Below are positions 1,597 through 48,438 of a stretch of 48,438 nt of DNA, one piece after another. The notes beneath the pieces are model-generated. The model was not told the origin of the DNA. It searched no databases and saw nothing but the letters and a program-made list of their open reading frames with translations. Numbering within the stretch: position 1 is the first letter of the stretch; each line of letters starts with the position of its first letter. The stretch comes from Perkinsus chesapeaki ATCC PRA-425 (Eukaryota > Protista > Perkinsozoa). A program made the position numbers and the translations under genes. Location: the NCBI GenBank assembly GCA_013115145.1, contig JAAPAO010000240.1:1-48438 (forward strand), written 5' to 3'.

Positions 1597-4226
1597 GATT
1601 ATCATTAGCAAGTTGAAAGTACAAGCTGGTCTTCATCCATGGAACAGCGGTGACTATGAGAAGTGAAAAACTCATTTTACTTTTCCTGTCATTTGGTAAA
1701 TGACATTTTTAGCCCCTTATCGATATTTCGGGTAACTTCGCCTGTTGCCCCCCTTCTGTGACGTGAACCTAGTAGAGGTATAATTCATTATGACTATTAT
1801 TATCGGTAATGGAATGACACCTTACTCCTCATTTTCTTTTGACGTTAACCTGGCCGTGCTGCGTTGTCGCTCACCACGACTACAAGTCACATCGTGCGCG
1901 CCAGAACTGTCAGTTAGACAAATTGAACAATGACCTCACCAAGTGCCACATCGAAAGTAGCTGGTAGGGAGAAGCTTTCGGTCGGGGCAAAGTCAATCTA
2001 AGTTTTGTACTCAGAACTCGGTATCATTCAGATTCTGAATGATACCGTAATTCAAGGGTTATATGATACTGCATCATACTTGAGCCGCTCAATTGGACCG
2101 TATCGAAGTTTAGAAGGGTATATCTGCCATAAAGCTGCGTTCAGAGAACTCATCAACAGCTGGCGGGGCGGCTCTCCACTAGTTGTGTTAGTTTGGCCAC
2201 AGGATATAGGAAGACGAATACAATGGCGTACCTCAGCGGATTCGAGCCCATAGAACATAAAATACGAGCTACCATTCACTGCTTAACGAGACATTATATC
2301 CAATTACTATCATTTGGGAGCTAGCCTGCAACCACGCTTACTTGGCAGCACCACAAGGCGACGAGGGTAAGCATTCCAAGGACTCCTTGGCAAGGAGTAG
2401 CTATCCATTTAATAATAGCTTTTCTCGATTTATTGAAACACCTTCTCCCAGGGTCACATGCGCTCATCTCACCAAACTTATGACAGGCGTCATAATGAAG
2501 GACTGACAATTAGACTGTTATGCTCAACGAGCAGCACCTAGTTTTAGAATCCACTCCTCAGGGACCCGGAGGAGCACGTAAAAGGATTACAAGCTAAAAT
2601 AAATAATAAATAGAGAAACAATACGCAATACCTACAATAGGTACAATCTTACGCTGTAAGCAGTTATGCTCTGCGAAGTATACCACAGTGCGGAAGTTAC
2701 GAACCGGGACTCGCGGGCGAGTCATCAAAGTCGCTGATTCGGAGAGCCTTCAAGTGTGCTAATTGTTAATACATTATTATTAGTGTTACGCCGATATCAT
2801 TGCCGACTACAGTACCTACAATGCGCGTCTCATCACCTCATCACGCGTCTTCATTTAGATTTAGGTACAACTAGGGTGTGTTGATCAATGAGTACCCTAC
2901 GCTTATGTTTTCAAGCTTAATAGGAGTATCCTCGAAGTCCCAGAGGCGAACTGCTTCCCAGTAGTCAGAAACGAATAAAAAGTACAAAATCGGTTCGCCA
3001 CATTCCGAGGAACCACAGCTCAAAAACTGTTTAACGCTAGACTCATGTTTTTGTTAGGAAAGTGCATAAATGCAAATCAATAAGACCTTACAGGAAACAC
3101 CATTTAAAATCTCATCCTTCTATCACAATTTTGTTTGGCTTTGCCGAAATAAGACACACAAGGCCGCTGGAGGGAGATTGTCTGCAAGTTCCATTTTTTA
3201 GCTGTTGAAGTCTTCTTTCGGCAACCACAATACATGAGTTTTACTTCGTAGAGCCCGTGATAGCAAGCATGGTGAGTTAACGGGCCGAGAGTAGTTAATT
3301 CACTGACACCGTTAGACATCGTGGAAGCGCATAGACTCGAATGAGCCTTCGAATGTCTTCAACATTCATCAGATCTCAGATTTTGCGCTCCATGTTCTTG
3401 CGTACCTCCTTTCTAGAGTTCGTAAAGAACTCTTCTGGATAACCCAAGAATCACAAAAATACAATCACTCAACAGTCCAATAAAGTCGTGATTTCCTTAA
3501 TTGATATTATCAGTCAGTTGAATAGGTATGAGCGAGATTATCAGTGAGGGCCAGGAGAAGCTGTGAAAGCTCTTTTCTTTGCACGTCAATCGAAAACCTC
3601 GGTTGTGGTCTTGCATTTACATGAAGATGACCAGACGAGTCATATGGTTACGGGAGCCCAAGATATGGAAAATAAGGTTTTCCACGTATGGACACTGCGG
3701 AACGTAGGCTTCCGAGCTTTTAGCCAGCCAGAAGTAGAGAATAAGTAGTAGAAGAAACGAGGCCAGAAGGAGTGCTAGCTCCGAGCTATGCCGGCTAAAC
3801 CGGCCACTTTCCTGCAACCCAAGATTTTCGGGTTTGGCCGCCCTGACCGCTCGGCGGAAGTATCGGGCCCTTCTAGTCCAATCAAACGATGATATACAGA
3901 TAAACAAGTTGAGGCAATCATTGAGCATTCATCGCATATGAGCGAGATGTTACTGCGGAACGACGAGGCCAAATTCATACGCGTGCGGAGATCTAGATGC
4001 GCACGACGCGCATCTTCGCCGCTCCCCCAACTTCAGCATGGGTTTTTGCTTCGAAGCGTGATGGAGGTTTACCCTAGGGAACAGCCGACTTGCTGCCTCA
4101 CGGACCTGTACCTGTGGGCCGTGTTCGTAGACCGTGTGACTTCAGATTAGCTATCGACATTCGAGCCCTCCCATAAGACCAATACATCGGTAAAATAACT
4201 GCTTTCTAGTGTCAGATCCACTTTGC

Positions 4227-5230
4227 ATGAGAGTAATCGCTTTCATCGTCATCTCACTCCACACCACCTTCAGCTTCGTGCACACTCAGGAAGCTCAAGG
4301 TAAGGTTCTGAATAACACGAATAAATTGCTGTTTTTAACATCCAGCTCCCAGGGAGCTGCTCCCTACTCCAAACCTACTGGAGACTGCCATTTCGCCGAT
4401 GGCCTGATTGTGGATTGTCACTGCCCAGAAGGCACTCAACCAATATTGACAGACGTGAGATGAGCACCACTGCTGATTTGTGGCACCAAGTCGGTGCTGA
4501 ATTTAGTAGGCTCTGGAGCACTAGTGGTGTACCTTAATTCTCAAACTTTTGCTGTAAGCCTCTCGTAGGTTACAACCTGAGGATACGCTGCCGGCGGCAG
4601 CCGCCGATCCTTCGGGGGCTATACTTTTGAGTTATGTTGTTTTGAAGTGTGCTAGGCTAGTAGAACTAGTTAATAGTGAAAAACGTACTCTCGTTTGAAA
4701 TTAGTTCCCGGTTTGGCCAGAGCTCATTTGAGTTAGTAATCGGTTGACCTATATTTGCCATGATTCGAATCCAATTTCTCAGACACATGCTTATCGTATG
4801 TGTGTGCCTCCTTGCAAGACCAATAAGGACTGCCCCCCCAAGCCCGGGAGGAAGATTTATCAAACCGGTCTGCCTTGGTGAGGAGTATTGCCTGCTCTCC
4901 TGTAACTCGGTAAGTTGATAACGCTTTATGGTGTACGGGTGAATCCATATCTAAAGGGCGTTTGTGCTTGTTCCAGGGCACTGGTTTCGGTCGTCGTACT
5001 AGCAACGGGACTCTCACATGCAGTACAGGGTTCCGGGTTCAGCGGATTCCCATTAGCCGTCCATTCTGCATTTTCTAACTTTCTTACCACATTAGTGGTG
5101 CCCCGTGAAACATACTTATGTCCTGAAAAAGCACCTTCACCATTATCAGATACTCGAGAAATGCCCTGGAAGCACATACTGCAGAAAATCTGATCAAGGC
5201 CGTATATGCCTGTATAACAAGTTCTCATAG
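4227..5230 (+). pseudogene. Multi-exon secreted Cys-rich protein locus, copy A (frameshifted)
   Basis: Signal-like exon MRVIAFIVISLHTTFSFVHTQEAQ|gtaagg, then exons CHCPEG, YNLRIRC, CVPPCKTNKDCP..CLGEEYCLLSCNS|gtaagt and EKCPGSTYCRKSDQGRICLY. Carries +1 indels relative to copy B in a C7 run (4833-4839) and an A5 run (5126-5130). Confidence 0.65.
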
Positions 5231-5389
5231 TGATGATCATATGACTCGCGGTGCGGTACCATTCTTTAAATGTTAATAAGTGTGCCGCCCTTAAGTGGGT
5301 TGAACCCAGTAGGTTTGTCAAGGTCTTAAATGGCTAGTATTTCTGCTGCTGCTGCTGCTGGGCAAGCGCCTGGAGCGTTCGAACCGCGC

Positions 5390-5970
5390 AGCTACTCATT
5401 ACTAGCTGTCATCTTCCCTTTAGAGGGTCCTGGTCACGAAACTTGACAGTGTGGAGTTAACGAGTAAATTGAAAGTATTTCGTAACCCCCTTCTGACTCT
5501 GAGTATTCACTCGAGCTTGAAGCGTTCGATGATAAAGTTTCAAGAGTAACTTGAATGGTACCATGTGGAAGATCATATCTCACTGTGGTATGGTTAGATG
5601 AAATCGCGATAACGGAGGGCTTGCCTGGCAAGTTAAGGATGCGAAGTACTACGTGACAATTTGACAAAGATTTCCCTCTCAAACATTTCTCTTCATGAGA
5701 TATGATGTGAATGCGCAGGAATTATACGTCAAGTTTCGATAACTGGGGGAACAATCGGTGACAGGTTGCTATGTTTGGATGCAGGGCTTGGATAGACTGG
5801 CTTGATGCGGGTTACTAAGCAAAACCAACTCAAGATTGAACAAACCAGACAACGAGGGGTTTTCGGTGCGGAATCTGAGCGTCACAGATCTGCTCATACT
5901 TGCAATAAGATTTTGCCGAAACGTACGGCGTTCAAAGGCCAAGTGAAATAGGTGCATACTCCGAGGGGTC
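5390..5970 (+). pseudogene. Decayed coding remnant, copy A
   Basis: Fragments LDEIAITEGL, FLFMRYDVNAQEL, GTIG..CLDA.LG and RLNKPD..SVRNLSV are conserved with 10300-11020, with differences mostly at third codon positions in the + frame. Multiple stops and frameshifts. Confidence 0.55.
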
Positions 5971-8004: not shown

Positions 8005-8263
8005 AATGCGTCAGTGAGTGTGAACCAAATATCCTCATAGACTTCCTTTTTTAACAGGAACCCACATTGACATTGACTTTGAACACCGAGGAGTTTGCCA
8101 AAGTGCGTTCCTCGGCGAAAGCTGCGTGAATGGCGATGTGAGTTTCATTAAGTTCGTTCACGCTACCAATGAAGACGTCCCCCGAGGGGAAATATCCAAG
8201 GGAGGGGGTAGCTGTGAGAAATGCAGCTGGTAGGACATCGAAGAGCACTATCTATGCTCTCAT
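8005..8263 (-). pseudogene. Pseudogene paralogue of the secreted protein at 22289-22732
   Basis: LFDVLPAAFLTATPSLGYFPSGDVFIG..NSSVFKVNV, then EDIWFTLTD in a shifted frame. TAG at codon 4 after the ATG at 8263. Confidence 0.8.
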
Positions 8264-8319
8264 CAATAATACGCAGGGTAAATCTGTAAGATAGCCTAAA
8301 GAAGAAGAAAACACATATT

Positions 8320-8705: not shown

Positions 8706-9150
8706 TGTAGCCATAGCGGGATCAAGCCACTCGTTTTCTGGTACAAACCCAACAGTCGGGGCATTAGACGAAGAAGGATTAGCCATCAGAAAATGTCAGA
8801 TTAGTACTATAAAGAGATACAAAGGGTACGAGACAATCATACCTACTCGACTGAACTCATGAAACGCCTCAAAAAGTAGAACTTCTTAAGCGAAAAATCA
8901 TCCTGCGGGAGCTCCTTCATCCAAGGCGCATGTTCCTCCCGGAACGACGCGGTGGGCAAGCGTTTTCCAGCACCGACCAGTGTTAAGGAAAGCATAGGAA
9001 TACCAAAGTTGAGAAAAGTATAGCTATCAGCAGAAAAGGTGGAGCATCCGCGTCGCAAGGACACGTACAGGGTAGGCATGCAAAGAGATTCGGCGTCTCA
9101 AACTCAGTTTAGAGCGCGGAGTGCGAGCCAGCCTACCCCCTCTGGCTGCA
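8706..9150. mobile_element. Solo-LTR-like (or MITE-like) insertion, 445 bp
   Basis: Absent from copy A, where the empty site reads gagccctcccataag. Ends TG...CA. Imperfect 15-bp terminal inverted repeat (TGTAGCCATAGCGGG vs reverse-complemented TGCAGCCAGAGGGGG, 12/15). 4-bp near-duplication CTTC/CTCC. Internal TATAAA near 8806. Confidence 0.7.
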
Positions 9151-9209
9151 CTCCCATGAGACCAATACATCGCTAAGATAGCTGATTGTTAGTGTCAGTT
9201 CCACTGCGC

Positions 9210-10202
9210 ATGAGGGTATTTGCTTTCATCGTCATCTCACTCCACACTATCATCAGCTTCGTACACACTCAAGAAGCCCAAGGTGAGGTTTTGAATAACA
9301 CGAAAAAAGTGTTGTCCATACAGTCTTTAACATTCAGCTCCCTACACTAAACCTACTATAGACTGGTCCCACATGGAGGCTCACTGTCCAGAAGGAAGTG
9401 TACTTATAATGACAGACGTGAGATGAGCACCACTGCTGATTGACGGCACTAAGCTGGTGCTGACTTTACTAGACCCCGGAGCACTAAATGTGTATCTCAA
9501 TTTTCAGAATCTTGCTGCAACCCTCTTGCAGGTTACAACCTGAAGGTCCGCTGCCGGCGGCAGCCTGCCGCCCAGGAATTTTGATCCTTCGCGAGCTATA
9601 GTTTCAAGTCATGTTGCTAGGCCGCTTTTTTTCAACGCCTATTTCGACAATAGTGGCTTCAATGTACACGGGCGAACGAGATTTACGTTAAGATTATCGG
9701 AGAATAAATTATAAGAGAATCGGTCGATCTATAATTATCATGATTCGAACCCAACCTCTCAGGTAAATGCTTATTGTATGTGTGTGCCACCTTGCAAGAC
9801 CCGTAAGGACTGCCCCCCAAGCCCGGGAGGAAGATTTATCAAAACGGCCTGCATTGATGCCGACTACTGTGTGCTTACCTGTAACTCAGTAAGTTGATAA
9901 CGCTTAGTGGTGTCCGGGTGACTCGTTCTTAGAGGGCATTTGTATGCTTCCCAGGGCACCGGCTTCATTCGCCGTACTAGCAAAGGGACTCGCACATACA
10001 GTACAGGGCTCCGAGTTCAGCGTATGCTCATTTGCCGTCCGTTCTGGTTTGTTTAACTTACCACATTAGAAGGCCGCGTAGAGCCTACTTGTGTCCTGAA
10101 AAGTACCTCCACCCTTACCAGGTACTCGAGAGATGCCCCGGAAACACACACTGCAGAAAAACCCGTCAAGGCTATGTATGCCTCTATAACCCCCGGGAGT
10201 GA
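9210..10202 (+). CDS. Multi-exon secreted Cys-rich protein locus, copy B (one or two small genes)
   Basis: MRVFAFIVISLHTIISFVHTQEAQ|gtgagg, APYTKPTIDWSHMEAHCPEGSVLIMTD|gtgag, YNLKVRC, open exon 9763-9888 (YCMCVPPCKTRKDCPPSPGGRFIKTACIDADYCVLTCNS), last exon YLCPEKYLHPYQVLERCPGNTHCRKTRQGYVCLYNPRE*. Cys positions are conserved with copy A. The full splice path is not resolved. Confidence 0.6.
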
Positions 10203-10299
10203 TGACCATATGACTGGTGATGCGGTATCATTCCAATAAGTGTGCCGCCCCCCAGTGGGTTGTCAGGGTATTGAATCGCTAGTAGTCTTGCTGCTGCTG

Positions 10300-11020
10300 A
10301 CCGCGCAGCTACTCATTATTTTAGCTGTCATCTTCCTTATGGAAGTACTTTGTAACGAAACTTGAGGGTGTGGTGTTATCGTGTAAGTGAAGAGTATTCC
10401 GTAACCCCCGTCTGACTCTGAGGATTCACTTGAGCTTGGAGTGCTCGGTCACCGAACTTCGGTGATAAAATGAGGGAAACTTGCAAGGTATCATGTGAAA
10501 GATGATACCTCGCTGTGGTATGCTTGGATGAAATCGCGATAACAGAGGGCTTGGCTGACTGATTAAGGATTTACGGCGAAGTACTACGTCGGCAATTCTC
10601 ACTCGAGGATTCCCCGTGCAATCATATCTCTTCCTGAAATATGATGTAAATGCGCGAGAATTGGACGCCAACTCGATAACTGAGGGAACAATTGGTCGCA
10701 CGGTGGTATGTCTGGACGCAGAGCTTGGTTATGTGGACTTGATCATCAAACCTTGATGCGCTCCGCATCCCGCATTATCAAACACAGTTAAATTGAGATT
10801 GAACAAGCCAGACAAGAAGAATTATTCGGTGCGGAATCTAAGCGTTAGAGATCCGCTCATACTTGTAACGCTATAAGAGGTGAACTGGTTATGCTGTCAT
10901 TTCATCCAGGGTGACACGAAATCTGTGCTTTTTTGAATAGCTTTATGAGTAGAGCGAAGATTTTCGCGAAACGTACGGTTTTCGAAGGCTGAGTGAAATT
11001 GGTGCATATTGCACCAAGGG
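10300..11020 (+). pseudogene. Decayed coding remnant, copy B
   Basis: LAVVCLDEIAITEGL, YLFLKYDVNAREL, GTIG..CLDAELG, RLNKPD..SVRNLSV. Stops and frameshifts are present. Confidence 0.5.
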
Positions 11021-22288: not shown

Positions 22289-22732
22289 CTACTTTCTGTA
22301 TAGTATAACATCCTCATCATTTCCGACCTCGACTTGACACATTGTGTACTTTTTATTGGAGTCCTTCTTGAATTCATAGGTATCAAGGGTCTCCTCGGTA
22401 GCTTGGACGCCACACTGCTTGCTGATAAAGGCATGAAGCTTAGGGAGATCCTTGCCCTCCTTGTCCACAACTCCGTATATGTCTTCGTCGACGTCAGTGA
22501 GTGTGAACCAAATATCCTCCTTGACCTTCTTTTCCCCGCAACTCACGATGACATTGACTTTGAACACCGTGGAATTTTCCGCGGTGCGCGTCTTGGCGAA
22601 CCCTGCCTGAATGGCCATGTAAGTCTTACCAGGGACCGTACCAACGAAGACCTCTCCCGAGGGAAAATATCCGATTGAGTGGGTAGCTGTAAGAAATGCA
22701 GCTAGTAGGATGTCGAAGAGCGCGAATCCCAT
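22289..22732 (-). CDS. Secreted hypothetical protein (147 aa, intronless)
   Basis: Hydrophobic N-terminus MGFALFDILLAAFLTATHS, intact ORF, and a clear paralogue at 8005-8263. Confidence 0.85.
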   Translation of the reverse strand: MGFALFDILLAAFLTATHSIGYFPSGEVFVGTVPGKTYMAIQAGFAKTRTAENSTVFKVNVIVSCGEKKVKEDIWFTLTDVDEDIYGVVDKEGKDLPKLHAFISKQCGVQATEETLDTYEFKKDSNKKYTMCQVEVGNDEDVILYRK

Positions 22733-22791
22733 CAGTTGTAGGTAGGATAAAGCTGTAAGGTAGCCTTAAGAAAAAGAAAGCACATACTGTA

Positions 22792-30697: not shown

Positions 30698-30769
30698 AGG
30701 TTCTACCGGGATTTGAACCCAGATAGCCAGATTCAGAGTCTGGAGTGCTAACCGTTACACCATAGAACC
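30698..30769 (-). tRNA. tRNA-Gln(CTG)
   Basis: GGTTCTATGGTGTAACGGTTAGCACTCCAGACTCTGAATCTGGCTATCTGGGTTCAAATCCCGGTAGAACCT. Paired acceptor GGTTCTA/TAGAACC, anticodon arm CCAGA-CTCTGAA-TCTGG, T loop TTCAAAT. Confidence 0.97.
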
Positions 30770-37049: not shown

Positions 37050-39976
37050 CATCAACTATATACATATTGTCACGATGCCACCCTATCAGCATGGGGTTCA
37101 TAACAATTTCTGCAGTCGCATGTGCTTTTTGTGATATTGGTTTGTTAAATTACAGTGTTGAGTCAGAACAGTAGCGCCGCTGATGATGATGAAAAGGTCA
37201 CGAGAAAGCGTAAAGCGAAATCCTAACGCTTAGTCCATGGGGGAGCTGAGCCGACCATGGAAAACGGGGAAGAACAATCTCGACGGTTTGATAACACAAG
37301 ATCAGATCAAATCTTCCTCGCTGGTCGGCTCTGGGATCCGACCTGTCTTGTCGCTCCTGATCTTAGTAGAGCAAGAGCATGCTCAGCCATTATAATGTTG
37401 GGAGTTGCCAGGTCTCAACTTCAGCGTCGCCAGGCAGGACCGGAGCTCTGCGGCTTTAGCGGCACCTTTGTTGCAGAGACGTGCATGACCGACGAGAGGA
37501 CTTGCTTGGGTTTTCATCCAATACACATAGTGTTAAGAGCAGCTTCATAAACTGGCCATGCAAAAAATACAGTGTCTTGCCTTCGCGAGCCGATCCTCAA
37601 TAAACATAACAGCAAGACCAGTGCATGGGTAAATCATCTGGTTCCAGCGGATCGAGTCGTGTGGCACGACTCGTGTCAGACAGATGCCGCTAGACATACC
37701 AATGTTTGAGCGACACAAGATAGACTGTCTATCATAGACATCGATATATATAGGCATACATTAGAACAGCAAATGCCATATACATATCCAGTCGGCAATC
37801 GACCGCTGGCAATATGCCCAAGCCCAGATGAATGACCAGCATGAACTTGCACGTAGTGTCGTAGCTACTGAACTCCAGCCAGCTCGGCTGAGGCAAGCCA
37901 ATGTTAAAGATCTCCGTGGCGAACGATCCCTTTGCATCAAGTCTGCACACGGAGACGCGAATAAACTGCTGTTCTTCCCGTTCCAGGCTATAGGCCGTGA
38001 AAGCCCCAAGCAGGAACCTTCGCTAAACACAGGAAATGACCGACATATGGCTGAGCATCATCACGACCATCCTGTGCTCTACCAGCAGACTCTTCTGCTG
38101 ATCTGCCTCGGCAGCTCTCGCTTCAGGAGGCTTGCACCCTATATGTAACCACCAGTGAATAAATGCCTATAGAATGCATCAGATAGAACTCGCTCGGCAT
38201 AGGCCATAAATGTGCAACTCCTGGGGAGTGATATCTCTCAGTCACGTGCTGCGCTTCGAAGGTTCGACTTCTTCAACACATCATCCAATCTCACTCAGTC
38301 CTGGCTTCACCGACCACATTGCCGCCTTCGCCTCGAGTATTAGTAATGGCGCAGCCGAGGATGTTGACGGAAGACCGTTAGCCAGTGCTATGTAGCGCCG
38401 AGCAAGAAAATCTCAACAGAAGCTTCCTGCTGAGAGGCTTTCTGTCAGAAAGCCTGGCCAAAGGCGCATAGGTACAAAGTAGTGAGATCCGTAGCCGGTC
38501 ACATGCCATTCACCTAAAGCACCGATGTAATGTTGAGCCCTGTAAGATACGGACATTGAAGGCAGGTGTGTGTGAGTTCATAGTCCAACGCCGAGATTGG
38601 CTTAGTTAGACTATCCATTCTCTGTGCAGCTTCAGAGCGAGAGTTTAATACCTAAACTGTTATTGTCACTGGAGGGTTTACCAAAAACGAATGTAGCTAG
38701 TCTCAAGAGATCCTACTCCTCCTAGCAGAATTCACTTACATGACCAAGGGCCTGTGTACAACTACCAAAACACAATGGCTCCCTAGGTGCGAGACCACAA
38801 GCTTCATCTCTAGGACTCAAGACAGGTATTCGGACTTGTCAACCACCGCAGATCTGAAACAACCCCAAACAAGGTGACGGCAAACACCGAGTTCTAGATG
38901 AGCGACAAGAATACCGGCATCCAATAGCATCTCATGGGGTAAACCAACCGGGCCATAAATACGACCACATAGTGATCACCGAAACCCTAGGCGGAACACA
39001 TGGATCAGTAGAAGAGTCGAGAGACCACAGCAAGATTCAAAAGCCCTCAACAATCACGAAGCCAATATCAAACACCGTAGCATCAACCCTTCTTGACCCA
39101 GCACAGTTCCTGGCAGATAGGAGACCCCAACACCTCCTACATCTTAGTCTTTGTACTAAGATATGTTCACTTGGCGAGCAACAACTAGCTGCAGGAAAAT
39201 GCACGAAGACATTAAAAAAATAAATAAATAGTGTAAAATAGGGGAAGAGAAAAAGAATCGTGTGTTTTCGCCACAAACTTGAGCCAGCATGGCAACAATC
39301 TACGCTCCGACAACAATCATCCTGCCGTTACAAATACAAATGCATAATCTAGCTTGCACAGGATTGTGTGGCAACACAAATATATGTGAGGAACCGACTC
39401 CGGCTCGAACTGTACCTCCAAGAACTTACCGTGCTCGAACCTATACCGTGCTTTCCAAGTCCACTAGAAAAAAAGGGCGTGGTGGGAGAACCGACGTGTG
39501 AAAGCATTCCGGTATAGGCATACTGGCCCAGTATCATACTGGGCTATAATACCTTAATTCCACAGTACCTTAATACAGTTAGCTACATTGAGCTATGCAA
39601 GTAATGTAGTAACAAAGCAACTACAACTACTTTATGTATCAATTACAGTAACTGCTCTATAACACGGCGACTAGCTGAGGTGAAAGCTGAGGGTTTCTCA
39701 AGAATGGAGGAAGGGGGGTTGAAGGTAAATCTCTGGCGACCCAGCAAGCGAACTTTGCCGATCACAGCGCGCTATGGCCCCCAAGTGCGCGTCGCAGTTC
39801 GCCGAACTGTGACGCGCCTTGGAGCCATCACATCGCAGGCCAATGATTGGACAAAACTGAGTTCGTGCGTCAGGGAGCCAAGCTACAAGAGCTCTTTTCT
39901 GGATATCTCACCTCGTCATCCCCGAAAGCCTTCGTACTACATCGGAATCGAGCTTCGTTTCCAGCTCTTTATAACT

Positions 39977-40816
39977 ATGACAACTCTCGCCATCATTCTT
40001 CTCGCGTATCTCCACGGGTTCCGGCAAGTTAGTAGCGAAGCCTTCGGCCCGCGTGGGATGTACTGTTCACTTGAACCCAGTAGTGGCTATCGTGATCTAC
40101 CTCGAGTGGCGGTGCACTTCTTCCCCGGAGAGTATCTCTCAAGAACGATGAGAACCCTTGGTGGCATCTTTAGAACTTACGTCCTGTCGAAAGACCTTCA
40201 TTACTTGGCAATTGGCAATGGAGAACTCAATTATCAAGTTCTTCGCCGTACCAACGACTCCATGAGAGTGTCTATATCCGCCAGCATTGCCCTGGAACAC
40301 TTGGAAGAAACTTCGGGCTTGAGTCGGGGCGATCTTCACCGGATGCGCTACGATGAGGACCGCTCTCACATTCTGATCAAGACTTCGAAGGGCAGCTTGC
40401 GATTATCTTATCTTGGATGCCAACGTTACTTAGTTGGTCAGACTTTCTGTTCTCCACCCGCGGCAGATGATCGCGTTCTGGGTTTAGCCATCACCATAAG
40501 ACATCGAAGAAGGTACCAAGAGCTGGATATTTCTATCAAACGGAAAAGGGTGTACCGAGGGTCATTTTCGTTGGATACGGATCGCTTTCCTATGAGGATC
40601 GGACTCACCAAGTCCAAGGAGAAGGACTTCGATGGCATCCTGAACGTTATGCCCAACGGCACAGAAGCATCCCATGAATATTTCTGGAACCGTGGTGAGG
40701 CTCTCGCCTGGGATCCAATATTGGAGAAAATAACTCTACATTTTGGAGCCTGGGTATCTAGGAGCACTGGGCCGACACCACCGGATGTTCTCTTGTCAAA
40801 TGGTTTCTGTCGATGA
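39977..40816 (+). CDS. Secreted hypothetical protein, intronless FGPRGMYCS family (279 aa)
   Basis: The likely true start is the ATG at 39977 (MTTLAIILLAYLHGFRQVSSEAFGPRGMYCS). Collinear with 760-1596 to the C-terminus. Confidence 0.85.
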   Translation: MTTLAIILLAYLHGFRQVSSEAFGPRGMYCSLEPSSGYRDLPRVAVHFFPGEYLSRTMRTLGGIFRTYVLSKDLHYLAIGNGELNYQVLRRTNDSMRVSISASIALEHLEETSGLSRGDLHRMRYDEDRSHILIKTSKGSLRLSYLGCQRYLVGQTFCSPPAADDRVLGLAITIRHRRRYQELDISIKRKRVYRGSFSLDTDRFPMRIGLTKSKEKDFDGILNVMPNGTEASHEYFWNRGEALAWDPILEKITLHFGAWVSRSTGPTPPDVLLSNGFCR

Positions 40817-41379
40817 TGCAATCCTTCGAGAGAAGACGTATGTGATAGTCCAACTGAGATCCTAAGGCTCTAGAATCTAAAGGATTCTCAAAAGCCAAAA
40901 TGTCAGAATTACCAAGCTAACTTGGTTTGACCAAGTGATTGTTCTGTCGCAAAGCGATGTTGATCGGTGCCGCTGTGAAATATGTCACGATGGATTCTCT
41001 CAGATCTACACAGCCTGCGATTTGTCATGATGTTGCGTTTATATAGTAACCTTCAATTGATGTCACACATCGTGACTGAGTGTGATGAGTACCATCAATA
41101 AAGTTATAGGCAGTAATCGTTCAGCAAAAAGCAGTTCGATATGGTTAGTTCACGGTATGGGGTATCCTGCCGTACTGGTCAAATCAACTTTATTTCGAAT
41201 CCTATCCCCAGGGGTACTTGCGTTGTAGCCATATACTGCGTCCTGGGCCCAAATATTGCACACGCTGAACGAACACTCGATAAGGTGTCATTGACAGCGT
41301 GCTGAATCACCACTGCGGGTGATCATGTGATATGATCCATATCCTGATTGTTGTTTGCTTAGCCGGTTGCATCCTTTTC

Positions 41380-43533
41380 ATGGGTAATTCTCTCTTCCTA
41401 GGAACGGATTACTGCGTTTTCAAAATCAAGTACGGAAACGAGGCTTTCAGGGTTAGGATTGGAGGTGGTCATTCTCAACAACATGCGGTCCTGAACGAGT
41501 AAGGTGCTATATAACATTCATCTGTGCTGTGGAACAATACACTATCGTGGTTTAATCTTACTAAGCCTATGTCAAGATTTTTTAGGTTGGTTACTGAAGC
41601 CTGGCCAGGTCTTAAAGGTGTTCCACACAATATTGTTGATGTTGAAGGAAATATCGTCATGGAGAAGAAGGATGATACTAAGAATAAAACTGATAGTGTG
41701 ACAGAAAACTACCCCGAACTAACACCTGACCCCTCTGGACTATTCCTCGAGTTCAAGCTCAGTGTGGAACTCGTAGGGAGAGCATCTGGGTCGGTGTCGA
41801 ATACATCTATTTTTCGTCACACAGCCAGTAGTATACTCAACTTCATATTACCTGCGGTGAAAGTAATGGATAAACATGAGGAGGCAATGTTGCATTTCAT
41901 TCCTTGTGGCGAGTGTTGTATGTACCCAACGGTCGGACGAAGGTGAGTCAAACACTTCTGAACTTTCAGCTTGAAATGGTTCAGCTAGTACCGCGCCATT
42001 TACGTTTTTGATACGTACCGTAAATGTTCGCCTGCTCCACATTCACTGTGTAACAGATCCTCCAGTGTTCTTGGTGCAGTACATCCCCTGTTGAAGTGGT
42101 CTCTTTCTAAGGTATCGCTGTTGGACCTGCCATCGGGACTTGTGCTTCCTTTGTTACCGTGAGCATGACAAAGGTCATTCGCTGGGGTCATGCAAGCAAC
42201 TGAATGATGGCTTGTGGGACAACTGCGATCTTTCGCGGATGTGCGAAAGATTTCAGAGCGATGGGACCAGTCAATTCCACCGTGTTGATAAGTGATCAGA
42301 TTTACCTCATTTACATCGTCATTTCTTCTTTATAAGATGGTCCTCTACACTTTCAGCTTGAAATGGTTCAGCTAGTACCGCGCCATTTACGTTTTTGATA
42401 CGTACCGTAAATGTTCGCCTGCTCTACATTCACTGTGTAACAGATCCTCCAGTGTTCTTGGTGCAGTACATCCCCTGTTGAAGCGGTCTCTTTCTAAGGT
42501 ATCGCTGTTGGACCTGCCATCGGGACTTGTGCTTCCTTTGTTACCGTGAGCATGACAAAGGTCATTCGCTGGGGTCATGCAAGCAACTAAATGATGGCTT
42601 GTGGGACAACTGCGATCTTTCGCGGATGTGCGAAAGACTTCAGAGCGATGGAACCGGTCAATTCCACCGTGTTGATAAGTGATCAGATTTACCTCATTTA
42701 CATCGTCATTTCTTCTTTATAAGATGGTCCTCTACACTTTGGCGAGAGAGTAGCGCCCGCGGCCAGGAACGACACAAGTATTTCTGGCCGTGAACAAGGA
42801 GGAAATGATATAGTTGGATACAAAGATTCTGGACTGACCCATTTCCTCCTAATATGCAATGGATGTGGTACCCATGCGCGAACATTAAGAAGGTGGGCTA
42901 AAATATCATGGCCAATCTTTGATTCGCGAACCTCAAGTATTTTCAGATATAAGTGCAATCTTGGAGAAAGGGTCAGCTTCTGCGAGAGGTGCTGCCGTAC
43001 CTATCAGAACATGATTGATAAGACTTGTTACAAAAGAGAGAGGGTTGTACAGCCTGGCTGCTGGGCCTCCGTCCCAGACAGCTGTCCAGGCCAAGGAAAG
43101 CCATGGGGATGGCACAAAGAACATAACGGCTTATATTGCGAAGATTGCAAGCGCCCTATATGTGGCAGAAGGTTAACTTGAGTTTGTAGAAACAGGTTAG
43201 TTGTACGTCATTCGATAGGTTCAACTGTGAGTGCTCTAATCTATGCTATGAATGCTATATCTCTCTCGGACAGAAAGCACACAGGGAGCGACACGAGTTC
43301 GAAGAGTATGCTGGCATTGTGGCCTTGTGGAGTTTCAGCACGAAACCGACGCCACCTGGTACCTCAAACCAGTGGGTCGTGTGCTAGTACGTATCTTCTC
43401 TCTGCCAGGCAAAAAAGCTGTCGAAGGTGCTGCTCCTTCAACTTCACTTAGAGTCAGAACTCTTTCGAAGGTCATGCTCAGGAGCATAATGGGATACTTT
43501 CTCGTCGTGTTAACCTGCTTCGCGACTTTTTAA
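41380..43533 (+). CDS. PB1 + three ZZ zinc finger protein (p62/NBR1-like architecture), about 437 aa, 7 exons
   Basis: Exons 41380-41498, 41577-41942, 42112-42281 (or 42499-42668), 42724-42892, 42947-43171, 43219-43358 and 43409-43533 join in frame via GT-AG introns. PB1-like VFKIKYGNEAFRVRI and DVEGNIV..DD. ZZ1 HFIPCGECCMYPTVGRRYRCWTCHRDLCFLCYREHDKGH, ZZ2 ICNGCG..RRYKC..FCERC, ZZ3 HNGLYCEDCKRPICGRRFNCECSNLCYECY..H...HEF. The first and last introns are the least certain. Confidence 0.8.
41962..42740. repeat. Tandem duplication, 387-bp unit, 2 copies
   Basis: 41962-42348 and 42349-42735 differ at 6 positions, all transitions. 5-bp microhomology ACTTT at the junctions. Confidence 0.97.
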
Positions 43534-44936
43534 TATTGTTCTCATTGATTCGGCTACCTATAACCCTACCTGATGGGTCTTTCTTGCGTTGATCAGATTT
43601 TTTCGCTCACAGTACTAATTGCTTGGGCTATACACTTCATCTACGGAGATGACCCTCGATTCTTCCACAGGTAAGCTTTTTGGTTGGCATCACTATAATA
43701 CTAGAACGTTAGGTAACTTGATGGTTAGGTAGCAAAACTGCAAGCTCCGCCATCCACATCCTCGCGTTCACGTTACGACGAGTTCTAACGCCCTTGGCTG
43801 TCCTAGACGAATCAGAAAAGATTCCTAAATTTCTGATTTCCTAGCAACTTGTGTTGCAGTCTCGATGCCCTTGAGGGCTCAGATGTCACATTACATCAAA
43901 TGATAGCTCTATAACCGGCATTCGGGGTCTCGCCGTGTTAGTTCACAATGTGACCGTCACATGAACGAACAAGGACTGTCTCGCTACAAACCTACATTGT
44001 AGCCTCGGGAACATAAGGCTCACTGGTTCACATGAGGTTCACCTGTCCCATGAATAACATCCTGCGAAACAATCGTGAATGTGAGCTCCTCGAGAATGCA
44101 CCTGGAAGGGCTCTCAAGAAATCTCTTATCTCAACATTTGGCAAGTTCTCTCGATATGCCCTCTCAAAAAAGTTTCGCGAGATAATTTCGCTGGGTAGTG
44201 CGAAACGCGGAACGCTCAACACTTACAGGCTGTAAGTTACAGCTACGAAGAGCATGACGCAGAATGTACGATAACCTATTTCATGCAATACCCAGCAGAG
44301 GGGGCCCCTCTGAGGGGCGCGGTGTGCTCGGCAGGAAATCCTCAACGACGTCCGGACACCCAATCAGGTTTTTCGGGGCTGGACTGGTGTGGCAGTCGGC
44401 CCACACGGGTGTATTCTACACCCGTGTGGGCAGTCTATTACACCGTGCATCTCATTACGCTTTATATTATATCTTTTTGCTACATCTGCATATCTGTGTA
44501 CTTGCAACTGTCTATAAGTATCTGTCGTATCACGGCACACGAACCTGTGACACAGGCCCTCGGTTGCGTAAGTGATTTCTGCTAGGAGGAGTAGGATCTC
44601 TCAACACCAGTTACGCTCCTCTTGGTGACCCATACAGTGATTTAAACTCTTCCCGAAGTTGCACATAGAGTGGATACCTTAAGCCGTTTCTGGCGTTGGA
44701 CCATAAACTCTCCCACACACGCCACACGAACACTATTGAACTTTATAAAACACACACATACAGACACATCAGAGCTCCTGGTCTTACTGATCCAGAAAGA
44801 TGCGGGTATATAAAAGCTGTTGGAACCTTTTGCAGGTTGACGCTCACTATAGTGTTCCTTTGGTGGCGCGAGATGCTCTTCACGTGAAGCAGCTTTTTTC
44901 AACTCGCGTTGCGATGGTTCCGAACCGGAACTTCCG

Positions 44937-45080
44937 ATGAGGATCCGCCATGTAAAAGCTTTCGTAGCTTGTCACATCATATTATGTTTTTTCGGCTTAC
45001 TGCCGCCGATAATGGGTCAAAGACTGGATCTAGATATCACATATGGATCCCTTAGCAGCTATGGTATAGGCGTGTTCTGC
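44937..45080 (+). pseudogene. 5' fragment of an aspartic protease gene
   Basis: MRIRHVKAFVACHII..LLPPIMGQRLDLDITYGSLSSYGIGVFC aligns with the gene at 48226. Similarity stops at ~45080, before the DTG motif. Confidence 0.8.
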
Positions 45081-46258
45081 TGCACAACTTCTGCATGTTC
45101 GATTGGGGTACTACTCCGAGAGATTATTGTTCAATAGTGTACTTTCCCGAATGTTAATTCCAAATAGTAATTAAGGGTCTCCGCTGGGTGGGATATGGTC
45201 TACTCGACCTTAAAAAGGTCAATTCAATCCTGGGCACTCTACTGAGTAGAGTCTAGTCGGGATTGACTGCGTCGGTTGACTATTATTTTAGTCCACACAC
45301 TTGGACACAGTGTTCATCTTTTATAACTGAACTTCAAGCTCGTAGCTTCAAGCCTCATAATACCGCCAAATGGTTGATGGGAAGAGCCTCTTCCCATCAC
45401 TGTCACTGTCAATCGGATTGACAGTACTCCCTCAGGGAGTAGATTCAGTGCTCCGGATAGTCAAGGCTAAACCTAGAAGGACGTTAGATCTTTACTCCTC
45501 GAAACCCGAGCTGCTCATCATCCCGTTAAGACACTCCGGAGGCATGAAGCTCGTGTTTCATTCGTGTACCTGAATTTAGCAATTTGTTCTCGATGCCAAC
45601 AGCCTTTATTACTAATAAGAGATAGAGGACGACGTCAAAATGAATCATAGATAAGGAAAGCAATTATACAGGGACATCCCTACCTGACATACGCACTATT
45701 GCCGCACAATCAGCCAGATCCAGGGAAACGGTCGCCGGAGACCACTGCTCGTAGTATACACGCGTGCAGCCCATTTCCTTGTAGGAGAATGAGAGTGGAT
45801 GGAACACTGTGGGGCGAGCTGCGGAGTCATCTTTCAAGCTTCCTGTACCGCTTTTCAAGAGAGTGCATCGGAGTTCTGGATTCCCAAGTGCAAGTGCTCC
45901 AAACTGTGCAGCATCTACACTGCCAATGATTTCAGCATTTTCGGGAATTTCAACACCAACGGAGGCTCTGTTGGTTGAAAATTGACTCCACTTGGAGCAT
46001 GGGTGAGAATTTGTGACTCATAAAGCCGGCAGAACTCGTATATACTTCTACTCTGATTTTTGCACGTACAAGAATACCAAAGGCTGCCGCATAAATACTC
46101 TATCCCAAACACTTATTGCTAATCCAAACAATCTCTTGCTATTATCTCTAGCTTACTGTCATTAAAATAATGGGTGCTGGCTAGTTATGGAGTCCATAAT
46201 ATGGACTATGTTATGTTAACACTAGTATTTGTTGGGGTGATTTGACGTTCTGTTGTAG

Positions 46259-46972
46259 GTAACGACACTCGCCAACAGGCTGCATCGAAGACCAAACGAG
46301 GACATCCATGTCCGATACTTTCTGGTGAAGTCCAATCGGATAGTACCTCGGAATATAGTGAATGTCACAAACAACGATGAGGAGATCTACCTCAGAGGAC
46401 TCCTCGCATCAGATTTCCCTAATGATGGTAGTGCGTACTATTTTACATGATAAGATAACGTTGTTTATTGTTCAGGTCTAAATATGTCCTTGGATGACGT
46501 TTTAAGTCACTATTATTGTTACCACCTCGTGACAGCATCAAGTGCAGGAATGGTTTGCACGTGCAAGGGTTGGAGAGATTGGGGCTGTTGTGGACATGCA
46601 TACGGAGCCGAGATCCTTTGCGGAACGCAAGTGAGGTACGATTATCTTGAATAATTTATCTACACCGTGTGGACTACACGATAACTACACTGAGTAAGAT
46701 TCGCACCGATCCCCTAGATACTACCCACATGATCGCCAGATTAGGAATGCGCGTAGAGGTCGCCCATCATCAAGAAGAAATCCGGCTGATGATAGATATA
46801 GACACCAGAATGGGCATGGTAGCATTCACGGGTTGATGGAAGAGGACAATCGCTTATGACAATCGTTTCAGGCACCGCTATCAGTGACAGTGACGTATCC
46901 ATTATTTCACATGCTTCGGATGACTCTCCAGCGGCCAATGACGCTAATGATGTTGACTCCATGAGCGAGTGA
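46259..46972 (+). mobile_element. SWIM zinc-finger gene, probably the C-terminus of a Mutator/MULE-like transposase (decayed upstream part ~45300-46110)
   Basis: Exon 46259-46427, 48-nt intron, exon 46476-46630 with CTCKGWRDWGCCGH (C-x-C-xn-C-x-H), and a later RRGRP motif. No terminal inverted repeats or DDE domain confirmed. Confidence 0.6.
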
Positions 46973-48225
46973 CCAAGTATGTCAGATTAAGATAGGCAAT
47001 TACAGCATGCTTCTTTATACTAATCTCGTTACATCAATTAACTTGGCATGATCGTTTCTTGCTCACAACCAACGCCGTTGAGTACTATAGTTGATATGAA
47101 ACTCGGTAGATATTATCTAGTAGGTAACGTACTCACTCTGGTGATAGTTACGAATCATAACTATCGATAATCGTAATACGATACTTTGGGTAATTCACCT
47201 GCTCAGATGTAGTTATGTCTTGTGAACATTGTCGAATACCGATCCTAAGTATCTCGCAGTACCCGGAGTGTCTCGCAGCTCTGCTGCGTTCAGCTGCGAA
47301 GCAGCTGTCCTTAGAGTGAGAGTGCTAGCGTTCGTTGTTTCTGTTTTTTATTTTGGGTTAGCAACGTATGTTTGGGTTAGCTATGTTACGCAAGGCTGCC
47401 TTGCTATGGACGAGTGGGTTGACTCAAACAAACGGCCCTAATGTAGGAAGAAGTGCCTCTTGTGGGCCGCTAATTAGAGACAGCCCCGATCCACCGCGCA
47501 GTGGCCAGAGCCTCCGTGGCGGCCACGGCGTGGCCGCAGAAGTCGCCTGGCGCAGAGGACAGAATAACTCACTTCGGCCACTTCCGCGAATCAGAGTTGC
47601 TCGCCGAGTAAAGAAGTGACGCTGCCTCTGCGAGATAGGAGACGGCGAAGATGGTTAAACACACCCAATACCCTCCATTTCTCTGCGTCTTCATGCATGC
47701 AGTTCTACTGATGCAGGGGAGGAGCGCTGCTGCCCTGACACGGCCCAACTCCCGTTAGCATAATACTCCAGGTTGCTATGCTAGTCTGGCATGGACCATG
47801 CCGCATGGTAGACTGATCAGAGTATGACACACGTGATACCACTAGTAACTTTTCGAGTATCGTAAGTTATGATCGAAACCTTCGATTCAAAAGTGTTTGA
47901 ACACATACTGCTGATGATGCAGCTGAGATCATTGCTGGCTCCACGGATGCCATTTCTGCTACCCTGTTTCATGTCCAGCCCAATCGGAGTATGCGTCGGA
48001 GTGGTGTCCTCACCGCATAACAGGTATGACGTGAACCACCGTGGAGTATATCGGATCTCCGACTCGCTGTTTCATCCCATATAAATGCATTTCAAATGTC
48101 GAGAACGAGCGCCACGGCCTATGGCTGCTCCAACCGATACCGGGCGTGACGCAAGTTCTGTCCCCTCATGGTTGATCCTGCTGCAGTTGAGCCGTTGAGT
48201 TGCATCCCAAGTTGCGATGGTCTCG

Positions 48226-48438
48226 ATGAGGAACCGCCTCGTACAAGTTCTCCTGGCTTGTCACTTTATCCCGCCCGCCTTTCGCTTACTGCCGACCATA
48301 ATGGGCCGAGTACTGGATCTAAATATCAGATATGGAAATCTTGGCGGATATGGCATAGGCCTGTACTGCGTGGTCGGTTTCCCTGGGTACGAAGTCTCTG
48401 CCTTAGTGGACACTGGATCGACGAGCCTCTTCTTCGTT
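48226..48438 (+). CDS. Pepsin-like aspartic protease, N-terminal part (runs off window)
   Basis: MRNRLVQVLLACHFIPP..LDLNIRYG..GIGLYC..SALVDTGSTSLFFV. Signal-like start and catalytic DTGS motif. Confidence 0.85.
   Translation, partial: MRNRLVQVLLACHFIPPAFRLLPTIMGRVLDLNIRYGNLGGYGIGLYCVVGFPGYEVSALVDTGSTSLFFV

Follow-up and report, generated by a model that had tools for sequence, protein, structure and literature searches.

A candidate PB1-like, multi-ZZ adaptor gene, probably misannotated, in Perkinsus chesapeaki

Among described proteins, an N-terminal PB1 module followed by a ZZ zinc finger is found in the selective-autophagy receptors p62/SQSTM1 (PB1-ZZ-LIR-KIR-UBA) and NBR1 (PB1-ZZ-FW-LIR-UBA). 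In Nbr1 of fission yeast and other fungi, several ZZ fingers bind cargo. ZZ domains that read free N-termini are also present in HERC2, PRT1, KCMF1, p300 and MIB1. NBR1 homologues are defined by the FW (four-tryptophan/NBR1) domain together with PB1 or ZZ, with FW as the minimum criterion; they have been reported in Alveolata, and p62 is reported to be confined to metazoans (PMC9582228). In the p62 ZZ domain, D129, D147 and D149 are each required for binding N-terminal Arg (Nt-Arg) (PMC6197226). Here, we describe a plus-strand locus beginning at position 41380 of contig JAAPAO010000240.1 (48,438 bp; assembly GCA_013115145.1), the whole of which was the window analysed. On balance, this locus of the clam parasite Perkinsus chesapeaki probably holds a real gene that is misannotated publicly and that would encode a diverged PB1-like/multi-ZZ adaptor of approximately 400–460 aa.

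The reconstruction of three ZZ fingers across exon junctions carries this reading. Fingers were judged by the Pfam ZZ profile (PF00569; gathering cut-off, 21.4 bits) and by the presence of eight Cys/His ligands in cross-brace order, and the sequence searches used pieces of the model, among them finger-sized joined pieces, exon 2, the 152-aa ZZ2/ZZ3 frame and residues 30–135 of P0001, the product of the public gene model. None of the single exon pieces had a Pfam ZZ match before joining, and each of the three fingers was regained only by joining two exons. In each of them, a phase-2 intron interrupts the Arg codon just ahead of an aromatic-x-Cys motif (GRR/YRC, LRR/YKC and GRR/FNC, the slash marking the intron). 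The strongest argument that the proposed exons form one unit, and that they are coding or were until recently, comes from these three junctions, each of which restores a ZZ domain at an identical point. These independent junctions, with their common split position and phase, and the first intron, which is shared with the public model, support the presence of a single multi-ZZ gene. The exon that opens ZZ2 has no start codon of its own and therefore needs the exons upstream.

The three fingers are unequally preserved. ZZ1 (41905–42178, exons 2 and 3 joined) passed the Pfam cut-off (22.1 bits, E = 1.3e-4) and has eight of eight ligands (C-x2-C-x11-C-x2-C-x4-C-x2-C-x3-H-x3-H); its PDB matches were the ZZ domains of HERC2 (E = 6.7e-5), PRT1 (4e-4) and p62 (3e-3), and also dystrobrevin, KCMF1 and MIB1. 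ZZ2 (42855–42992 and the residues after it) scored 15.3 bits (E = 0.017), which is below the cut-off, and its best PDB match was the HERC2 ZZ domain in a gap-free alignment (0.045). At its second zinc site, three of four ligands are gone; with Gly at the position of the fourth Cys and no His at either ligand position, only the first zinc site can form. The sequence-only reading that had first drawn attention to the locus had likewise found ZZ2 short of several ligands. ZZ3 (43137–43294) had no Pfam ZZ match, and its PDB matches were the ZZ domains of HERC2, MIB1 and p62 at E values of 0.007–0.05 (HERC2, 0.0074; p62, 0.04). Its ligand spacing is shortened, with the second Cys pair reduced to C-x-C and the next spacer one residue shorter. 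A B-box identity was considered for ZZ3 and rejected, with a score of 23.1 bits against a cut-off of 24.1 and with ZZ domains at the top of its PDB matches. Thus, the earlier proposal of three ZZ fingers stands for ZZ1 by the Pfam profile and for all three by the ranking of PDB matches, whereas the profile scores of ZZ2 and ZZ3 do not reach the cut-off.

Comparison with the described ZZ domains points to a shared scaffold with altered pocket residues. HERC2, PRT1, KCMF1, p300 and MIB1 were the best matches of all three fingers and have the same cross-brace ligand pattern; unlike these proteins, the Perkinsus protein lacks any catalytic domain such as HECT or RING, and its acidic pocket residues are only partly kept. 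In the alignments to PDB entries, ZZ1 (CGEC, CHRDLC) retains only the D149 equivalent of the p62 triad, ZZ2 (CNGC, GERVSFC) retains none of D129, D147 and D149, and in ZZ3 (CEDC) Glu replaces D129 and the positions of D147 and D149 are lost in the shortened loop. The triad is complete in none of the three fingers, which bears out the earlier remark that the acidic residues reading N-degrons are only partly kept, and at most one residue of the Nt-Arg pocket of p62 (D129/N132/D147/D149) is kept per finger. R139 of p62 has an Arg counterpart in all three (GRRYRC, LRRYKC and GRRFNC).

The gene model (Table 1) was built from the sequence and its three-frame translation. It runs on the plus strand from ATG 41380 to 43387 or 43533 in 6–7 exons; all introns are GT-AG, the phases agree throughout and the frame contains no internal stop. 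Intron lengths are 87, 169, 207, 70, 54 and 47 nt. Intron 1 is common to the NCBI model and equals a 29-codon gap in the tblastn alignment of P0001. The predicted product has 397 aa with one copy of exon 3, 457 aa with both copies and 429 aa with the alternative tail. The spliced reconstruction proposed earlier was therefore recovered as a phase-consistent GT-AG model from ATG 41380 with intron 1 as in NCBI, but its length of 437 aa was not. By a codon-usage log-likelihood for which the contig's four long open frames served as training set, the proposed frame was favoured over the other five in all exons except exon 4, in which the frames tied and the coding score was the weakest among the exons of the model; in exon 2, the proposed frame had the best score of the six. 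This result lends the model weak support. Without use of its donor, the frame of the first copy of exon 3 ends at a TGA at 42293–95.

Both ends of the model have alternatives. The candidate alternative last exon, the coding score of which was weak, reaches the end coordinate given by the sequence-only reading and would add a 41-aa tail that ends in a hydrophobic stretch of ca. 16 aa; the tail had no Pfam match. A 28-nt intron (43381–43408) leading to the same tail was rejected, being too short and breaking the frame. At the 5′ end, translation from an in-frame ATG at 41332 would lengthen the protein by a hydrophobic stretch of 16 aa (41332–41379), and a strong acceptor-like site (TTGTTGTTTGCTTAG/CC at 41360–61) lies between the two start codons. 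Spliced-leader trans-splicing is known in Perkinsus. The site at 41360–61 could be a spliced-leader addition site that drops ATG 41332, in which case 41380 would be the first AUG.

Table 1. Predicted exons and related features at the PB1-like/multi-ZZ locus (positions in the window; the slash marks the splice position).
Feature	Position	Strand	Description
Exon 1	41380-41498	+	PB1-like beta1-beta2 (FKIKYG..FRVRI), start of helix 1; donor GA/GTAAGG
Intron 1	41499-41585	+	87 nt, GT-AG
Exon 2	41586-41942	+	Rest of PB1-like region, linker, N-terminal half of ZZ1 (CGEC..GRR); donor AAG/GTGAGT
Exon 3, copy 1	42112-42291	+	C-terminal half of ZZ1 (YRCWTC..CFLC..H..H), then Cys-rich linker
Exon 3, copy 2	42499-42678	+	180 nt, equal phase at both ends
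Exon 4	42749-42892	+	Linker, N-terminal half of ZZ2 (CNGC..LRR); start uncertain
Exon 5	42947-43171	+	C-terminal half of degenerate ZZ2, linker, N-terminal half of ZZ3 (CEDC..GRR)
Exon 6	43219-43387	+	C-terminal half of ZZ3, LIR-like EFEEYAGI (43295-43318), stop TAG 43385-87
Candidate alternative last exon	43409-43533	+	Via 50-nt intron 43359-43408 (CTG/GTACCT ... CTCTCTGCCAG/G)
Tandem duplication	41962-42740	.	2.0 copies of 387 nt, 98% identical
FOL47_004212 exons	40592-40696, 41401-41498, 41586-41772, 46259-46435, 46871-46969		tblastn of P0001

The locus also contains a tandem duplication that copies one half of a ZZ finger. Each 387-nt unit contains the 180-nt exon 3 together with flanking intron sequence, namely 150 nt from the end of the preceding intron and 62 nt from the start of the following one, and the copies differ at two intron and four exon positions, the exon changes being two synonymous ones, F>L and S>G. 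This duplication within the gene was not mentioned in the sequence-only reading. In two DNA runs from different studies, the repeat was collapsed at 1.55x and 1.8x the flank depth, and a 55-nt contig over the joint between copies 1 and 2 (42324–42378) had 0.86x the flank depth in run X3 and 0.5x in run X4. Because the repeat depth and the joint contig were seen in two independent DNA runs, the duplication is real DNA, and it may be absent from some haplotypes. Perkinsus chesapeaki is reportedly polyploid. Since the exon is 180 nt long with equal phases, including both copies holds the frame, and the copies are therefore not forced to be mutually exclusive; the second would add an extra half-finger without the first CxxC. 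The ZZ array probably grew through successive duplications of a unit that a phase-2 intron interrupts at a constant position, with the 387-nt tandem duplication as the most recent such event. The locus would then show domain-array growth in progress, in which a 1.5%-diverged duplication has newly copied one symmetric exon.

Upstream of the fingers, the spliced sequence contains both motifs on which the earlier PB1 assignment was built, FKIKYG (41419–41436) and the OPCA-like DVEGN..DD (DVEGNIVMEKKDD at 41638–41676). Read by eye, the region appears to fit the PB1 pattern, with K-x-K-Y-G, R-x-R on the next strand, a helix and an acidic hairpin. This arrangement resembles p62, in which ZZ likewise follows a PB1 module that has both a basic strand and an acidic segment, and NBR1 shares the combination of PB1 and ZZ.

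A number of results weigh against a PB1-like/multi-ZZ gene at this locus. The correctly spliced N-terminal region (P0001, residues 30–135) matched no Pfam family at E ≤ 10, PB1 (PF00564) included; the PB1-like region had no PDB sequence match by phmmer at E ≤ 10, and its language-model neighbours in the ESM Atlas contained no PB1 cluster. The PB1 identity claimed earlier is thus without statistical support from Pfam, PDB sequence search or language-model neighbours. AlphaFold without an alignment gave low predicted local distance difference test (pLDDT) values in two runs (38.9 and 42.1), and the first of these low-confidence models had the order strand-strand-helix, to which the second added two more strands (strand-strand-helix-strand-strand). 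When the second low-confidence model was searched with Foldseek, the list was headed by the PB1 domain of Arabidopsis NBR1 (6tgn, E = 0.11, TM 0.42–0.44), and the rest were beta-grasp folds, including the PB1 domains of p62 and MAP2K5 and a PB1 complex. With VIA-align, 65–80 residues were aligned at 2.6–3.5 Å to structures that were all ubiquitin-like or PB1, in a mixed order, at Z ≤ 5.5, which is below the level where such matches discriminate. All of the fold matches fall below significance (E ≥ 0.1, Z ≤ 5.5). The predicted order of strands and helix and the beta-grasp folds among the matches speak for the PB1-like reading, and nothing contradicted the expectation of a ubiquitin-like beta-grasp, but at a pLDDT of 39–42 membership in PB1 is not established. 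A PB1-like beta-grasp at the N-terminus is plausible but unproven.

Further adverse results concern homologues, transcripts and splice sites. When exon 2 was searched with phmmer at all lengths against 1.84 billion representative proteins, only P0001 and three repeat proteins that look spurious were returned. Word-based searches found no homologue of the PB1-like region among candidates of 120–381 aa, and none of the 152-aa ZZ2/ZZ3 frame among candidates of 84–266 aa, a length range that leaves out full-length paralogues of at least 400 aa; two metagenome scans also found no homologue. Nothing of the stretch was present in the listed RNA runs, all of which are tiny. The junction between exons 3 and 4 is ambiguous, as several donor/acceptor pairs hold the frame: two alternative starts of exon 4, 42767 and 42779, keep the donor unchanged, and a third, 42724, goes with the donor at 42669. 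The most acceptor-like site (42722–23) is usable only with this weak donor at 42669; its combination with the donor at 42679 was rejected as a path to ZZ2, because it shifts the frame into a stop at 42791–93. The 3′ end is ambiguous as well, with 43387 and 43533 as alternatives.

The deposited annotation also differs from the proposed model. The sole annotated gene over the locus, FOL47_004212 (protein P0001, 218 aa), takes in the PB1-like exons and, according to the tblastn mapping, bypasses all ZZ exons by splicing 41772 to 46259–46435 and 46871–46969; were it correct, the ZZ exons would be a separate gene or non-coding. It has the standing of a deposited annotation, and the codon usage of its distal exons is also coding-like. 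However, its first exon falls inside an open frame of 403 codons, of which a paralogue exists at 718–1593, and for this reason looks borrowed from another gene. It requires a 4.5-kb intron, against 47–207 nt for the other introns here, and its donor (CTC/GTAGGG) is weaker than AAG/GTGAGT at 41943. It removes the first half-finger of ZZ1, which exon 3 completes exactly; the exons of ZZ2 and ZZ3, which it would leave on their own, have no start codon upstream of ZZ2; and its product has no Pfam domain. Given the position of its first exon inside another open frame, the 4.5-kb intron and the truncation of ZZ1, FOL47_004212 looks chimeric, and we consider it very improbable that it is the correct model. 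A decaying or silent paralogue of a PB1-ZZ family, that is, a young pseudogene whose open frames are left from a recent functional state, is a less remote alternative, although still an unlikely one. It would agree with the lack of transcripts in the tiny RNA runs, the lack of homologues at any searchable length, the three ligands missing from ZZ2 and the shortened spacing of ZZ3, the half-finger inserted by the duplication, the weak acceptor of exon 4 and the failure of the annotation pipeline to call the ZZ exons. It is less easily reconciled with a spliced frame of 1194–1374 nt that contains neither stop nor frameshift and has GT-AG at all splice sites, with an intact ZZ1 and with a coding score that favours the proposed frame in nearly every exon. 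Moreover, degenerate fingers are common in working multi-finger proteins. A functional gene with a PB1-like N-terminus and several ZZ fingers is the reading that we favour.

For the product of such a gene, a role as a p62/NBR1-like selective-autophagy receptor, as the sequence-only reading had proposed, appears rather doubtful. Cargo bound by the ZZ fingers of such a receptor would be concentrated by PB1 polymers, and a LIR would anchor these polymers to phagophore ATG8. Both p62 and NBR1 begin with a PB1 module followed by ZZ, ZZ1 and ZZ3 match the p62 ZZ domain in the PDB, NBR1 homologues are reported in Alveolata (PMC9582228), and the Perkinsus protein has one good LIR-like motif, EFEEYAGI, with acidic residues before it. 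Against these likenesses stand the incomplete p62 triad in every finger, the unproven PB1 and the position of EFEEYAGI, which begins right after the last His ligand of ZZ3; such four-residue motifs are also frequent by chance. As noted earlier from the letters alone, FW and UBA are missing: Pfam searches found no match to either in any exon, in the alternative tail or in the plus-strand frames of at least 46 aa to the end of the contig, so that both are absent from the gene and from 5 kb downstream. The Perkinsus protein thus differs from NBR1 in having neither FW nor UBA, and from p62 in having three fingers instead of one, no UBA and a PB1 that is undetectable by sequence. A literature search gave no link between Perkinsus and NBR1 and no described Perkinsus PB1-ZZ protein, in line with the earlier statement that such a receptor is not known in perkinsids. 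Of the receptor proposal, then, the ZZ part is upheld by the search results and the architecture is plausible, but FW, UBA and the p62 triad are absent and PB1 escapes sequence detection. A link to autophagy is possible, although it is a guess from the partial architecture.

The adaptor that we favour would consist of an N-terminal PB1-type beta-grasp, in which strand 1 has a Lys, strand 2 has Arg residues and the acidic OPCA-like stretch is partial, followed by one canonical finger with eight ligands, one with the first zinc site only and one with a compressed second Cys pair. The PB1-like module would dock front-to-back with itself or with other PB1 proteins, and the ZZ fingers would bind short peptides in a pocket unlike the Arg/N-degron pocket of p62. 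The protein could then serve as a scaffold or adaptor, recruiting to PB1 assemblies the partners bound by its ZZ fingers. A more elaborate version is a perkinsid-specific selective-degradation or sequestration system, in which many PB1 proteins with different tails would co-polymerise and this gene would supply a cargo reader that relies on ZZ alone, has a non-canonical peptide pocket, works without FW or UBA and is tethered to ATG8 by EFEEYAGI or to a membrane by the optional hydrophobic tail; we regard this as speculative and distinctly unlikely. If the proposed model is true, the known adaptors gain a PB1-like/multi-ZZ architecture that lacks both FW and UBA, from parasites in which no autophagy receptor is known to have been described, and an apparently chimeric public gene model is corrected. 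For autophagy biology, its value is that of a candidate only.

The gene stands alone on the contig, and the other features observed there are minor. Directly upstream is the 403-codon stop-free frame (39605–40813, plus strand), with a signal-peptide-like start from Met 39977; it is unannotated except for the part taken as exon 1 by the NCBI model. It had no Pfam domain and no database homologue in a word-based search, and its paralogue on the contig is a 292-codon plus-strand frame at 718–1593 with 74% nucleotide identity over 150 nt. Downstream, an open frame between the distal NCBI exons (46454–46651, plus strand) had a sub-threshold SWIM zinc-finger match (15.9 bits against 19.6), which may point to a separate SWIM-type gene or to the remnant of a transposase. 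A tRNA gene at 30698–30769 on the minus strand (RF00005, 64.4 bits) was the sole Rfam match on the contig. Dispersed repeats of 70–82% identity, none of which overlaps the gene, pair 4165–5905 with 9148–10868 (a 1.8-kb direct pair), 8009–8317 with 22492–22786, 38566–38757 with 44718–44550, and 44935–45080 with 48224–48369; these look like segmental duplications or repeat elements.

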